Part shown: positions 42,269-61,615 of the stretch, in pieces
How the letters are laid out: every line of letters starts with the position of its first letter
Position numbering within the stretch: position 1 is the first letter of the stretch
Program-made: the position numbers and the translations under genes
Sequence record: NC_070936.1
Length of the DNA: 64,000 nucleotides
Reading direction: 5' to 3' (one strand)
Notes under the pieces: model-generated
Seen by the model: the letters and a program-made list of their open reading frames with translations, nothing else
The model's database searches: none
Told to the model about the DNA's origin: nothing

Positions 42269-42270
42269 AT

Positions 42271-42729
42271 GTGCACAGTAACTCAGCTGAATACATGCTG
42301 AATGGAATAGTTGTACTGATCATGTTAGGATGTATTATAGGAGCTATTTGGATCTTTGTCTATGATCGCTCAGCAGACCAAAGGTTCAGTTGGCACCAAC
42401 TCGTGAAGAACAGTTTCCACGTTGTGGTTATTTGTTTGAATGGGAAAGAATACACTCTTGATATTCATTACAACTGCAAAGCACAATCTCCGGTATACAA
42501 GTTGAAAGGACAACGTAGTTTAGTACTATATTTACCCACTGGCTTTACACGTCAGCAATTTCTAGACTACGTAAATGGATTAACGGGTATCGATGATCAA
42601 TTGCTTAAGGTCATCAGAAGTATTAGAAATGAAAGCATTCTTAAAGAATGTGATTTCACACATGAGGATATTTCAACATACCGAGACTTTAAACGACATT
42701 TGCTATTAAAGGCTTTAAGAAATAAATGA
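42271..42729 (+). CDS. Membrane-anchored protein
   Basis: GTG start; N-terminal TM helix (IVVLIMLGCIIGAIWIFVY). Confidence 0.75.
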   Translation: MHSNSAEYMLNGIVVLIMLGCIIGAIWIFVYDRSADQRFSWHQLVKNSFHVVVICLNGKEYTLDIHYNCKAQSPVYKLKGQRSLVLYLPTGFTRQQFLDYVNGLTGIDDQLLKVIRSIRNESILKECDFTHEDISTYRDFKRHLLLKALRNK

Positions 42730-43136
42730 ACGTAATACTCTTTGCAGTGCTGTTCATCTTTGCCGTCCTTATTGGTAAACTAGTTATGGGTAATCCCAAA
42801 TCTAAAGTTACTTCAACCATAAAAGGTCGAGTAATGGTGATAAGATATCAAGACAGGATTCTTAATGTGACTGGAGACCGGAGTGTAAGGTTAGTTCTTT
42901 ATACCCGATTTAAGAATGTTGAGCATATCGTCATTCCAATTGGGAGGGGTAAGGAAACAGCAGATCAGGTGGAGAAGTTCTTTATCACATCGAGAAGAAC
43001 CTCTATCTTAGCAAAGGGACTATTCTCGTTCAGTTCTGCTATTAACCCGATAGAACTAATGCAGTTCGATCCAACCTGTGCAGCCGAATTAGTAGAAGCT
43101 CAGTTAAAGTTACAATCCTTCTGTAAAATGAAATAA
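42726..43136 (+). CDS. Membrane-anchored protein
   Basis: N-terminal TM helix (VILFAVLFIFAVLIGKLVM); ATGA overlap. Confidence 0.75.
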   Translation: MNVILFAVLFIFAVLIGKLVMGNPKSKVTSTIKGRVMVIRYQDRILNVTGDRSVRLVLYTRFKNVEHIVIPIGRGKETADQVEKFFITSRRTSILAKGLFSFSSAINPIELMQFDPTCAAELVEAQLKLQSFCKMK

Positions 43137-43140
43137 ACAA

Positions 43141-43191
43141 CATAAAACCCCTACCCCTCCTTTCGGAGTGGGTAGGGGATAATAACTTATG
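43141..43191. terminator. Bidirectional hairpin terminator, repeat family copy 4
   Basis: CCCCTACCC-CTCC-TTTC-GGAG-T-GGGTAGGGG between convergent genes. Confidence 0.85.
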
Positions 43192-43200
43192 TTATTTTTT

Positions 43201-57550: not shown

Positions 57551-58395
57551 TAACGTTTCCTTGGAACTGTCATCTTAATAGCATCAGACTTACCTTTCGG
57601 ATCAGCGTATGCGAGATATTTCTTAATCTCATTATTATAGAGATCTTTGAACTCTCTGTGTGCGTCTGCATAACCCTGGATGTCATCTTGAACATCCTCA
57701 ACAGTAACACCGAAACGAGATACTGCTTCTTGCATACCACGACGACAAGTTTTGTAGATATAAGCCTTTACACCTAACTCAACGAGTTCAGCAAACTTAT
57801 CATACATTCTTGGTGGGATTACAGAGAAGTGTTCATCATAGGACAAGATGACTTTAGCAATCATGTTAAACATAGCCGAACCAGCATCACGGATAATAAA
57901 TGAGTTATTACCTGTCATAGTGAAACTGGTGAAAGAACGTTGCACCTGTCCATCATCTAAACCATTAATTAAACGGTTAAGGCTGTTGTTCATCATACCA
58001 GAACCGCAAGCAGCATAGTTATTAAAGTTATAACCATTATTGATAGCTCTGTTGATGTTACCTGGATAAACTTCGAGTACAGATAGGATACGACGACCCC
58101 CTGTCATAAAGTCAGGTACGTTTACAGCTATGATACCGCCTGAAAGGTTTTCAATATGAGCCGCACTAAGATCAATGATCTCTGTTGTCCCACCTGCTAC
58201 GTTTAACAGGGGACCGACCATCTTCATGATAACCTTTTCACGGATACCTTGCTCAACAGTAAACTCGTCATTCACTGGAGACCAAATGCTACCATAACCG
58301 TTGTTTGGGTTATGAAACGCTAGTTTCAATAAATATTCAGATATGTCAGTAGGTCCATTAATAACGTACTCTACTGAAAAGTCAACTGGATTCAC
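57550..58395 (-). CDS. Conserved phiKZ-family protein
   Basis: 281 aa, GTG start with RBS GAGG; TAATG coupling to the next gene. Confidence 0.75.
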   Translation of the reverse strand: MNPVDFSVEYVINGPTDISEYLLKLAFHNPNNGYGSIWSPVNDEFTVEQGIREKVIMKMVGPLLNVAGGTTEIIDLSAAHIENLSGGIIAVNVPDFMTGGRRILSVLEVYPGNINRAINNGYNFNNYAACGSGMMNNSLNRLINGLDDGQVQRSFTSFTMTGNNSFIIRDAGSAMFNMIAKVILSYDEHFSVIPPRMYDKFAELVELGVKAYIYKTCRRGMQEAVSRFGVTVEDVQDDIQGYADAHREFKDLYNNEIKKYLAYADPKGKSDAIKMTVPRKR

Positions 58396-58515
58396 GTTTG
58401 AACCCTCCTAATCACTATTTCGAAATAGACCTTTATAAAAGGCATTGATCTCACTATTCAACCATCCTAGGTTCATAATAGAGAGAAGACGTCATATGAT
58501 TTAAAACTAAACAAA

Positions 58516-58560
58516 CATAAACCCCTACCCCTTCCTTTCGGAGGGAGTAGGGATTAAATG
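58516..58560 (-). terminator. Hairpin terminator family copy 5, closing the minus-strand RNA locus
   Basis: CCCTACCCCTTCC-TTTC-GGAGGGAGTAGGG. Confidence 0.75.
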
Positions 58561-59500
58561 CTTGGCTACATGGACACTCGAAAGGATAATCAATAATGTC
58601 AGGGTTGCAAATCCCGTCTCATTACAATTACCCAGACGGCTGTCTACGGTTGATGTCAACAACTTCCCCTTGGCATAGGGGCGGACCGTTTGCACTTGGC
58701 TTGGTACGCTATAATGCCATATAGTTACCTTCCAATTTCAGCGCTGTTGTCTCACCCTTGAACATCGGGTGGTCGCTCACGGTTAGGGCACGACTGTTCT
58801 ATGACGGTTCCACCAGTGCTGGAGACACTTAAATGGATACCCGTTTCGTCTAATTATTTATTGTCGCCAGACTCGTCAGATAGTACGACATACCCTCACC
58901 AAAGGGATTAGGTTGGTCCTCTGATATCGCATGAGTAACTATGTTACTCTCATAGGCTCTTTGAACATCAATGTTCAACCTTAAGTTATGCTTTCGTTCA
59001 GAAGGACCGATGGGATGTGTTCCCGCATCATCAACTCTCAAGCTCATCACAGTTTCTGCATATATAGCTAGGGTTTGTTCGACGCCAGAACACAAAGGGG
59101 TACAGCGTTCCCAACTTTTGATAGATATTGTTTTTTATGACCGCCCAGGATGGAGTTCGGGTTCTACCATCATCGATAACCCAATAGTCACGTATCGGGA
59201 GTGCATTCAGCTTATGCTACTGGACATTCTATCAAACGCGCTGCTATGTCGCCGAGGTTTACCAGGGCAACACCCACCAGAGGCTACTTACTATAGCGGA
59301 CTACCGCCGCCGTTCACACTCTGGGTTTTTAACTCGGCCTACATTGCCGAGTACTGCCTCCGTAATTTGTCTGCCCAGTGGGGCCGAACTCTACGGAGGT
59401 CTTACATCCCAATACCGTTGACTGGCAAACCCCTTCCAACCCCGGATCAACCGGCTCATTGGACCAGACTTACACTTCCCAACTTAACTGGGTTACTACA
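58561..59500 (-). ncRNA. Large structured ncRNA block 1 (~940 nt), class unassigned
   Basis: No credible ORF. Nested helices such as 58915-24/58998-59008, 59277-82/59319-24 and 59357-64/59392-99. Bounded by a tRNA CCA and a terminator; contains a hammerhead. Confidence 0.75.
58796..58890 (-). ncRNA. Type I hammerhead ribozyme, predicted GUC cleavage between 58803 and 58802
   Basis: CTAT-CTGACGA-GTCT[17 nt]AGAC-GAA-ACGG[33 nt]CCGT-C-ATAG: full catalytic core plus stems I, II and III; loop-II GCGACA is complementary to the 5' flank TGTCGT. Confidence 0.88.
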
Positions 59501-59577
59501 TGGTGGCCCTGACAGGACTTGAACCTGTGACCAGGCGATTATGAGTCACTTGCTCTAACCAGCTGAGCTACAGGACC
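59501..59577 (-). tRNA. tRNA with CAU anticodon (Ile2-like, or elongator Met)
   Basis: GGTCCTGTAGCTCAGCTGGTTAGAGCAAGTGACTCATAATCGCCTGGTCACAGGTTCAAGTCCTGTCAGGGCCACCA; encoded CCA. Confidence 0.95.
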
Positions 59578-59585
59578 ATTGCTTG

Positions 59586-59825
59586 TTATGCTTCTACTGC
59601 TTTCAGATGACGGTCAAGATCTTCGTAACCACCAACATACTGATCGTCAACTACGATCTGCGGAACAGTACGAACTGGACGACCGACGATTTCACCCAAT
59701 TTGGCGCCATCAATACCAGCTTCTACGATATTGATATATTCAACTTCAGCACCTTTGGAATCAGCCAGTGCTTTGGCGCGATCACACCAAGGGCAATTCG
59801 GTTTGCCGTAGATTACAACTTTCAT
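59586..59825 (-). CDS. grx: Glutaredoxin
   Basis: CPWC active site, RTVPQI, VGGYEDL. Confidence 0.95.
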   Translation of the reverse strand: MKVVIYGKPNCPWCDRAKALADSKGAEVEYINIVEAGIDGAKLGEIVGRPVRTVPQIVVDDQYVGGYEDLDRHLKAVEA

Positions 59826-60060: not shown

Positions 60061-60148
60061 GCTATCGGGAGTAAGATTCGAACCTACATAGTCTTACGGA
60101 CGTATCCGCCTTCGAATTCCCTCACTAAGTTTAAATAGACTATCCCGA
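60061..60148 (-). ncRNA. tRNA-like RNA A (acceptor and T-arm, no proper anticodon arm)
   Basis: TCGGGA/TCCCGA stem, GTAGG-TTCGAAT-CTTAC T-arm, TAGTCT/AGACTA helix, CGGA-TACG-TCCG hairpin; no CCA. Confidence 0.6.
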
Positions 60149-60166
60149 AAAGTGGCACTTATGATA

Positions 60167-60448: not shown

Positions 60449-60916
60449 TTAAACTTTTGGCTCTATTCCTTGTTTAATACAGTTGTTGCGATATCCATCC
60501 AAATCGAATATCCCATCAACCATATTCTTCATTAGGGTTTTCATCCCCAATCCAGTTCCCTTTGCTGCCTTTCTTGCAGAAGAATAAACTACATTACCCA
60601 CGGTCCAACCATTTGGTCTAGACATCTTAACATGATTGCTCCTATGAACCTTTTCGGAATCTTTCCAATTATCCTTATGGGTTCCTATGGCAATATGTAA
60701 AGGAGAACAACATAATCTATTCCCGCACAAGTGCCTGACAACTGTATTTGGTTTTAGAGTTCCATAAATGTGGGTTGCTACTAATCGATGTGTCGTCCAG
60801 TGTTCACCATCAATAGTTATTTGACCATAACCTTCCCTAGTGCTTTTGGTCCAATTCCAGCAGCCGGTATCGGAATCAAATTTTACATTAGTAAAAACCA
60901 ATTTAACTTTTGACAT
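60449..60916 (-). CDS. Free-standing HNH homing endonuclease (155 aa; start reassigned from 61054)
   Basis: GCWNWT..GYGQI..HRLV...VRHLCGNRLCCSPLHI..GTHKDN (HNH_3 pattern); C-terminal YSSARKAAK helix-turn-helix-like DNA-binding segment. Confidence 0.9.
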   Translation of the reverse strand: MSKVKLVFTNVKFDSDTGCWNWTKSTREGYGQITIDGEHWTTHRLVATHIYGTLKPNTVVRHLCGNRLCCSPLHIAIGTHKDNWKDSEKVHRSNHVKMSRPNGWTVGNVVYSSARKAAKGTGLGMKTLMKNMVDGIFDLDGYRNNCIKQGIEPKV

Positions 60917-60951
60917 ATTAATTCCCGTTCTACCGACTGAACTACATGAGC
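60911..60951 (-). pseudogene. 5' remnant of an enterobacterial-type tRNA-Asn
   Basis: GCTCATGTAGTTCAGTCGGTAGAACGGGAATTAATATGTCA: intact D-arm GTTC-AGTCGGTA-GAAC; collapsed anticodon arm; the ATGTCA variable-loop sequence supplies the HNH start codon. Confidence 0.75.
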
Positions 60952-61615
60952 TTGGGCGGGAGTCACTAGCTCCCAGGTCAGACAATGTCCAACTGTAACT
61001 CGGTTTGATTACCTCACGGCAACCCTGCTCTGGCATCACATGGGTCTCACCCATTATCCCCCAGACTTGGCCTACGATGGCTCCTTTGGCGCACCCAACC
61101 CGAAACGCTCGCTCAAAGACTTATCGTAATAAAGCTTTAAGCAAGAGTTTAACCCACTTGACATCTAAGTCAGCACTGATTCTTACTTGCAATTCAACAA
61201 TCAGTTTCGGTTTACCTGACACCTTGGTCAATGTATCACCCGGTTTGTATCTATCACTTTTGGAAGGGCAGTGGGTTATTTGGTTTTGTCTGCGATAGCT
61301 TGGACCCTGCTCATCTGGATCTCTTCTCCGTGAGGACTGAAAGCACTATTCAAGACTAACGCTTAGTATAACGAAGTATATCTAAGATTCCGAACTTAAT
61401 CGGTAGTTGTTGAGTATCGTAGAGGGACTCGTTTCCAAATTGTGGTCCTACCATTATACAACACTAGTTAGGCTGGAACATGTAATCGCTAGTGAAGTTC
61501 CTATTCGCTGCAACGCGGGCCTAGGAAGGGAATTGGCGAACCGGCTGATCGAGGCGAATGACCATGGCTTAATCATTTCTTTTAGTGTCAACCAGTTCTT
61601 GTTCTTAACAGAGTA
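60952..61615 (-). ncRNA. Large structured ncRNA block 2 (~660 nt), class unassigned
   Basis: No credible ORF. Helices 61151-58/61270-77, 61176-81/61199-204, 61362-61386, 61462-67/61489-94; GNRA-capped hairpin 61008-61023 on the minus strand. Confidence 0.65.

Follow-up and report, generated by a model that had tools for sequence, protein, structure and literature searches.

A conserved candidate type-I hammerhead ribozyme within a large structured non-coding RNA of phiKZ-like jumbo phages

Introduction

Thousands of hammerhead ribozymes are known, many of them in phages, where their biological roles are mostly guesswork. Type-I hammerheads of phages and prophages in which stems I and II are joined by a pseudoknot were described in 2011 by Perreault et al. 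(PMC3088659). A preliminary description of a 64,000-nucleotide stretch of phage DNA (hereafter, the window) proposed that a complete ribozyme of this type lies inside a large non-coding RNA encoded on the minus strand. The locus raises the question of whether this motif is a genuine hammerhead and, if so, what self-cleavage would accomplish within such an RNA.

Results

Source phage and organization of the locus

The window corresponds to the last 64 kb of Klebsiella phage N1M2 (MN642089, 253,367 bp), with 100% identity over positions 58300–59600. N1M2 encodes fragments of multi-subunit RNA polymerases, both virion-associated and non-virion, and its own authors regard it as a relative of Pseudomonas phage OBP; these features place N1M2 among the phiKZ-like jumbo phages. 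The RNA that contains the candidate hammerhead shares its strand (minus) with a tRNA-Asn/Arg/Met cluster and with downstream virion genes, among them the gene at 58395–57550, which lies downstream of the hammerhead and encodes a 281-amino acid product matching Pfam DUF7484. The interval of ~1.1 kb that separates tRNA-Met or a glutaredoxin gene from the gene for the 281-amino acid virion protein is syntenic among jumbo phages. Apart from the ribozyme itself, the elements of the locus in N1M2 are the following, in the order of transcription:

59501–59577, minus strand: tRNA-Met (CAU), identified by ARAGORN and by the Rfam tRNA model (62.6 bits), directly upstream of the non-coding RNA
58907–59495, minus strand: 5' domain of the non-coding RNA, ~590 nt, starting a few bases after tRNA-Met and conserved in 12 aligned relatives
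58893–58906, minus strand: hairpin P0 (CCCU-UUGGUGA-GGG), just 5' of the ribozyme, with GGUG in its loop
58554–58798, minus strand: optional 3' domain, ~245 nt, present in 9 of 12 aligned phages and begun in contig L038
58509–58553, minus strand: intrinsic terminator, UCCCUACUCCCUCC-GAAA-GGAAGGGGUAGGGG followed by UUUAUGUUUGUUU, with covariation in 12 aligned relatives

Sequence and predicted fold of the ribozyme

The minus strand between 58890 and 58799 carries the full hammerhead consensus in type-I order, with all 11 fixed core nucleotides present. It reads UGUCGU-A-CUAU-CUGACGA-GUCUG-(G CGACA AUAAAUAAU)-UAGAC-GAA-ACGG-(33 nt)-CCGU-C/AUAG, where the slash marks the predicted cleavage site, and is made up of these elements:

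58885–58890, minus strand: 5' strand of the pseudoknot, UGUCGU, pairing with 58862–58867 in loop II
58880–58883, minus strand: 5' strand of stem I, CUAU, pairing with 58799–58802
58873–58879, minus strand: core nucleotides C3 to A9, CUGACGA, invariant in 13/13 sequences except at N7 (C, U or A)
58848–58872, minus strand: stem II (GUCUG/UAGAC) with loop II; G10.1-C11.1 present in 13/13, outer pairs covarying
58845–58847, minus strand: core nucleotides G12, A13 and A14, invariant in 13/13
58804–58844, minus strand: long stem III, composed of ACGG/CCGU, UCCA/UGGA and AGUG/CACU, with covariation in the inner and distal helices
58803, minus strand: C17 (H17), invariant in 13/13, 5' of the predicted scissile bond C58803/A58802
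58799–58802, minus strand: 3' strand of stem I, AUAG, pairing with 58880–58883

The topology is that of type I, in which the 5' strand of stem I is followed by CUGANGA, the stem II hairpin, GAA, the stem III hairpin, C17 and the 3' strand of stem I, such that stem I is open and stems II and III are closed by loops. The complete type-I hammerhead of the preliminary description is thereby recovered in full, including the core, G10.1-C11.1, A15.1-U16.1, H17, all three helices and the TCCA/TGGA pairing that prolongs stem III. Its account of stem II and loop II requires adjustment, as both elements are present but the loop comprises 13–15 nt rather than 17 and the stem 5–6 pairs rather than 4. Loop II holds the 3' strand of the pseudoknot (GCGACA, 58862–58867) followed by an A-rich tail. 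Stem III is closed on the core side by the A15.1-U16.1 pair, corresponding to A58844-U58804 and invariant in 13/13 sequences. Cleavage is predicted between C58803 and A58802 because the hammerhead consensus sets C17 there; this is the site originally suggested, and the invariance of C17 in all 13 sequences argues for it.

Two further loops are conserved. The terminal loop of stem III has the sequence UCUCCAG (58819–58825), and UCCA occurs in this loop in all relatives except one. Hairpin P0 is found in the aligned homologues, with GGUG within or beside its loop. No consistently placed complement or covarying partner was found for the stem III loop. The loops UCUCCAG (58819–58825) and UUGGUGA (P0, 58893–58906) of the minus strand could pair through CCA/UGG, an arrangement beyond the reach of covariation because neither sequence varies.

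Conservation and covariation among 13 phages and contigs

A descriptor scan of the window returned exactly one match, at 58890–58799. From 300 dinucleotide shuffles of the window, 0.01 chance matches are expected for the strict descriptor (at least 4 bp per stem) and 0.19 for the loose one. As a single-sequence match the site is suggestive, being only moderately improbable by chance. Folding of the single sequence with RNAfold was no better than that of shuffles (z = -0.62); of the expected helices, the minimum-energy fold includes stem III and the pseudoknot, whereas stems I and II are absent from it.

The decisive support for the predicted hammerhead comes from sequence comparison, namely conservation with covariation across 13 homologues. 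The motif occurs at the equivalent site in 13 distinct OBP/pEt-SU/AH04-like jumbo phages and contigs, N1M2 included. The named relatives are Serratia phage Yubaba, Shewanella phage SXP01, Pantoea phage Survivor, Pseudomonas phage OBP, Edwardsiella phage pEt-SU, Kosakonia phage Kc263 and Erwinia phage AH04; an exact-pattern scan of IMG/VR added four jumbo contigs of 260–271 kb, and a metagenome scan added one more (L038). All catalytic nucleotides are invariant in the 13-sequence alignment, and the sole varying core position, N7, is the one that hammerheads leave unconstrained. Core loss in close homologues, which the preliminary description had named as an observation that would tell against a hammerhead, is thus not seen.

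On the proposed structure, including the pseudoknot, 88.7% of cells are paired, versus 30–48% when the 3' partners are slid by 1–3 columns. Changes on both sides are found in 17 of the 29 pairs, versus 2–8 in the slid controls, and none of 500 shuffles reached the observed covariation. Compensatory changes are present in all three stems and in the pseudoknot, and the helix covariation also holds on a model-based alignment of 37 hammerheads. The contact that had been noticed between loop II and the 5' flank (TGTCGT/GCGACA) proves to be a covarying 6-bp pseudoknot (58890–58885 with 58867–58862), for which 97.4% of cells are paired and four of the six pairs change on both sides, with single positions exchanging U-A, G-C, C-G and A-U. 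In many hammerheads, across all three types, experiments have shown that a pseudoknot linking stems I and II is needed (PMC3088659). Stem I itself takes forms such as CUAU/AUAG, CACC/GGUG and ACAU/AUGU among the relatives, and the pair adjoining the core is always formed (UA in 10 sequences, CG in 2 and GC in 1). The AH04 clade has only 3 contiguous pairs in this stem, and the fourth pair is unpaired in 7/13 sequences.

The most strongly conserved part of the locus is the hammerhead, whose mean pairwise identity of 63.5% compares with 45.7% in the 5' domain and 51.9% over the beginning of the downstream gene. In all features that define the class at the sequence level, the predicted N1M2 ribozyme conforms to a type-I hammerhead whose stems I and II are joined by a pseudoknot, and the comparative evidence makes it very probable that 58890–58799 (minus strand) is functional.

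Copy number and comparison with Rfam

A covariance model built from the 13-sequence alignment assigns 96 bits to the site in the window, and no second match turned up in the rest of the window or across the other 189 kb of N1M2. Descriptors for type-II and type-III hammerheads, applied to the whole genome, returned only two loose matches with 3-bp stems, both inside coding genes. By descriptors and covariance model, the 253-kb genome has a single hammerhead.

The preliminary description had also suggested a check against the Rfam Hammerhead_1 and HH models, which gave no match. No hammerhead was reported at the gathering threshold in the 64 kb, nor at E<=10 in segments of 3.1 kb and 1 kb, and the Rfam hammerhead models gave no match in 8 homologous loci. 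The relevant families, which we take to be Hammerhead_1 (RF00163), Hammerhead_3 (RF00008), HH9, HH10 and Hammerhead_II, are of the same class as the N1M2 ribozyme by core and helices, yet none of the models reaches E<=10. As a control, five unrelated phage contigs with textbook compact type-I hammerheads were scanned, and these were missed as well. The silence of Rfam is uninformative here because the same scan misses canonical compact phage hammerheads; the result looks like a gap in model coverage and is no argument against the hammerhead class. The Rfam hammerhead models thus miss both the N1M2-type subfamily and the compact type-I hammerheads of phages.

Compact type-I hammerheads were seen in several copies on unrelated, smaller IMG/VR phage contigs (four on L015, three on L009 and two on L022). 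They often lie just upstream of a ribosome-binding site, and none is reported by Rfam at gathering.

A large structured RNA surrounds the ribozyme

Of the 46 pairs that RNAalifold predicts for the 5' domain, 26 show compensatory changes. The domain matches no Rfam family at E<=10, and no open reading frame within the non-coding RNA region is conserved across the relatives. When a profile of the 5' domain was compared with 154 loci, it matched solely at loci that also carry the hammerhead; conversely, the hammerhead is linked in 13/13 cases to the non-coding 5' domain and not to any coding gene. To date the host RNA has been seen only in OBP/pEt-SU/N1M2/AH04-like jumbo phages. A host RNA devoid of the ribozyme was sought in IMG/VR with a 16-base pattern, TGTAAGACC...AAATCCA, which proved non-specific (at least 117 matches); among the pattern matches listed, no fetched one fits the 5'-domain profile, and eight listed matches scanned with the ribozyme covariance model gave no match.

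A likeness of AGUCCGC and AGAACCCGAA to conserved regions of RNase P was considered and rejected: covariation places AGUCCGC in a local hairpin, and none of the RNase P models gives a match.

The region 3' of the ribozyme is more variable in extent. The 3' domain is counted in 10/13 members, including L038, whose contig ends inside it. Phages SXP01, Survivor and pEt-SU lack the entire domain; their terminator starts ~25 nt past the cut site, so that the 3' product would be only a terminator piece of ~60 nt. Where the domain is present it opens with a hairpin 8 nt past the cut (58772–58794, minus strand), found in every phage having the domain, with a nearly invariant 13-nt loop, GCCYUAACYGUGA. 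In the 3' domain and terminator together, compensatory changes occur in 28 of the 57 predicted pairs.

A terminator of the type CCCCUAC...GGUAGGGGUUUAUG closes the locus in all aligned relatives. The proposal that the hammerhead is embedded in a large non-coding RNA ending at a terminator is upheld by this comparison. A simple terminator scan did not detect the terminator at 58509–58553. Terminators of the CCCCUAC...GGUAGGGGUUUAUG type recur elsewhere in N1M2, at L044:15812-15909, L043:10437-10515 and L045:37911-37955.

Predicted cleavage and its products

In hammerhead chemistry, attack by the 2'-OH of C17 leaves 2',3'-cyclic phosphate and 5'-OH ends. The N1M2 hammerhead would be transcribed in the direction of the tRNA-Asn/Arg/Met cluster and its stems I–III would fold, with the 5' end of the large RNA presumably arising from tRNA processing. 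As the covariation suggests, the 6-bp pseudoknot would hold stems I and II side by side; judging from the covariation and from other hammerheads (PMC3088659), this pre-alignment should allow fast cleavage at cellular Mg2+. Following the established chemistry, the 2'-OH of C58803 would attack its 3' phosphate to yield an upstream RNA with a 2',3'-cyclic phosphate at C58803 and a downstream RNA with a 5'-OH at A58802. The original estimates of fragment size, ~700 and ~250 nt, come close: the distance from the tRNA-Met 3' end to C58803 is 698 nt, and the downstream fragment, from A58802 to the terminator U-tract at ~58510, would be about 290 nt.

Stem I, with 3–4 pairs beside the core, would be too short to hold the product, and the downstream piece would be released. 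From its anatomy, the ribozyme should remain attached to the upstream RNA. The cut would thus remove the terminator hairpin and, where present, an accessory domain of ~250 nt, and the ~700-nt RNA would gain a defined end blocked by the cyclic phosphate, however efficiently the phage or host polymerase terminates.

What the cleavage may be for

The best explanation of the locus is probably an active type-I hammerhead that forms the 3' end of a structured non-coding RNA of ~700 nt. The upstream domain is the constant partner of the ribozyme, because in three phages the terminator alone follows it. This constancy, the expected attachment of the ribozyme to the upstream RNA and the short stem I together make 3'-end formation the most likely outcome. 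As to purpose, we lean towards 3'-end maturation of the upstream RNA. Why a terminator hairpin should be removed is a matter of conjecture.

The conserved 3' domain, present in 10/13 members, suggests that the downstream product may matter too. It is conceivable that the ribozyme serves to release the ~290-nt 3' RNA as the functional product, or as one of them, its 5'-OH and terminator hairpin shielding it from 5'-end-dependent and from 3'-exonucleolytic decay. The structured and conserved character of this domain (28 compensatory changes among its 57 pairs with the terminator) and the nearly invariant 13-nt loop 8 nt past the cut would accord with such a role. However, SXP01, Survivor and pEt-SU keep an intact catalytic core without any 3' domain, and we consider this use unlikely.

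Processing of operon transcripts has been proposed for prophage hammerheads. In phages such ribozymes are often found beside genes and are considered to divide long transcripts into units of gene length (PMC3088659), and the unrelated phage contigs with 2–4 hammerheads each, upstream of ribosome-binding sites, would fit that pattern. In N1M2 the virion gene at 58395–57550 shares the strand of the ribozyme, and cleavage might uncouple the precursor of the tRNAs and non-coding RNA from virion mRNA generated by read-through, thereby setting the 5' end and stability of that mRNA. A strong conserved terminator, however, always lies between the ribozyme and the gene. The hammerhead is moreover the sole one in 253 kb, and in 13/13 cases it is the non-coding domain, not a coding gene, that accompanies it. 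Operon processing of this kind therefore appears improbable.

A regulated or reversible ribozyme would account for the conservation of UCCA in loop III and of GGUG in the P0 loop, neither of which has an obvious catalytic role: either element could sense a factor controlling cleavage, or the ends could be rejoined, by RtcB or by the ribozyme, to give circular or spliced RNA. The preliminary description had pointed out that both ends are substrates for RtcB-type ligation, which is correct as chemistry, but there is no sign of ligation or circularisation in use. No second ribozyme is available to make a matching 5'-OH or cyclic-phosphate end, loop III has no covarying partner, and circular or spliced hammerhead products were sought in the phage context by Perreault et al. 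and none were found (PMC3088659). Nor is an RNA-repair enzyme named in the genome, with RtcB, Rnl and Pnkp all absent from the names of the 261 N1M2 features, most genes being 'hypothetical'. The one gene annotated as 'RNA ligase', N1M2_40 (MN642089 26400–26864, L042), matches Pfam Acb1 (E = 1.5e-14); it is an anti-CBASS 2H phosphodiesterase, a counter-defence gene, and not an RNA-repair ligase. Nothing supports circularisation of the large RNA, and regulated or reversible cleavage is very unlikely.

That the motif is a chance match or a decayed, non-cleaving remnant conserved merely within the architecture of the larger RNA is scarcely credible, for while 0.19 loose-descriptor matches are expected per shuffled window, thermodynamic folding disfavours the hammerhead fold and Rfam gives no match, the catalytic nucleotides are all invariant (only N7 varies) though the flanks are only ~46% identical, compensatory changes occur in three stems and the pseudoknot, and a structural role alone needs no fixed unpaired catalytic core.

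The tie to one RNA in 13/13 cases and the three variants with a terminator alone therefore narrow the likely job of the hammerhead to 3'-end formation, an idea that is directly testable. If it is used, the ribozyme-made end gives the exact mature boundary of the large RNA for structural and functional work.

Relation to known ribozymes and phage RNAs

The N1M2 ribozyme resembles the phage hammerheads described previously (PMC3088659) in its identical core, type-I topology and Watson-Crick stem I/II pseudoknot, and in its occurrence in phages in sense orientation within transcripts. It differs from them in several respects. Loop II of the N1M2 type is unusually large (13–19 nt) with an A-rich tail, and stem III forms an extended hairpin of ~40 nt in three parts, capped by a conserved loop. 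The N1M2 type is present in one copy per genome, in contrast to the gene-flanking arrays, and is located inside a structured non-coding RNA of ~1 kb rather than between coding genes. What is new is thus the enlargement of loop II, the length of stem III together with the conservation of its loop, the single copy and, most of all, the strict linkage to a large structured RNA without a match in Rfam.

Theta ribozymes (Kienbeck et al. 2024, PMC10879173) are likewise small, self-cleaving and located in the tRNA region of phages, and for them too it has been suggested that no protein nuclease is needed to set the 3' end of an RNA. They have an HDV-like fold and cut at the tRNA 3' end, whereas the N1M2 ribozyme is a predicted hammerhead whose cut would fall 698 nt away; theta ribozymes mature tRNA, and the N1M2 hammerhead would mature a large non-coding RNA.

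GOLLD and ROOL (Kretsch et al. 2025, PMC12286853) resemble the host RNA in being large, ornate, phage-encoded and tRNA-adjacent, and one example of GOLLD was originally discovered 3' of tRNA-Met. The host RNA gives no match to the Rfam models of GOLLD and ROOL at E<=10, and the likeness is confined to genomic context. The passages of that study dealing with tRNA and phage mention no embedded self-cleaving ribozyme in GOLLD or ROOL, in contrast to the predicted hammerhead of the N1M2 host RNA.

The ~1 kb structured RNA of these phiKZ-like jumbo phages is recorded in no database or genome annotation, and a literature search brought up no paper reporting a hammerhead, or a non-coding RNA of any kind, from these phages. 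The host RNA may represent a new class. More tentatively, and with slightly more doubt than belief, the hammerhead can be regarded as an obligatory module of an undescribed structured phage RNA of 0.7–1.0 kb whose function needs cleavage. If so, the requirement would be for either the cyclic-phosphate terminus or liberation of the accessory 3' domain, and this would be the first known case, among the large 'ornate' RNAs of phages, of a 3' end generated by the RNA's own ribozyme. The phages concerned encode their own multi-subunit RNA polymerases, and the RNA is placed after tRNA-Met much like GOLLD.

Neighbouring features of the genome

Several minor observations concern the surroundings of the locus. 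The annotated hypothetical protein N1M2_252 (58971–59522, plus strand) lies antisense within the 5' domain and overlaps tRNA-Met. It is probably a spurious gene call, because the frame is broken in Yubaba, which is 90% identical.

Within the tRNA cluster, a weak tRNA-like match (20.7 bits, E = 0.57) is located at 60063–60149 (minus strand), between tRNA-Asn and tRNA-Arg. The same spot is occupied by tRNA-Ser in Yubaba, OBP and Survivor. The N1M2 sequence is probably a decayed tRNA gene, because its resemblance to the Yubaba tRNA-Ser remains in the 3' half only. An open reading frame of 201 amino acids (60449–61054, minus strand) abuts tRNA-Asn and contains an HNH endonuclease domain (PF13392, E = 1.9e-9); it may encode a homing endonuclease at the edge of the cluster.

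Further away, a stretch of 930 nt without an annotated gene (42269–43200) has counterparts of 78% identity in Serratia phages Yubaba and Sureiya, and these carry annotated small hypothetical proteins. It has no Rfam match, and its last ~100 nt recur elsewhere in related genomes. The preliminary description called the hammerhead-bearing RNA 'distal', and 42269–43200 may be the other non-coding region that this word implies.
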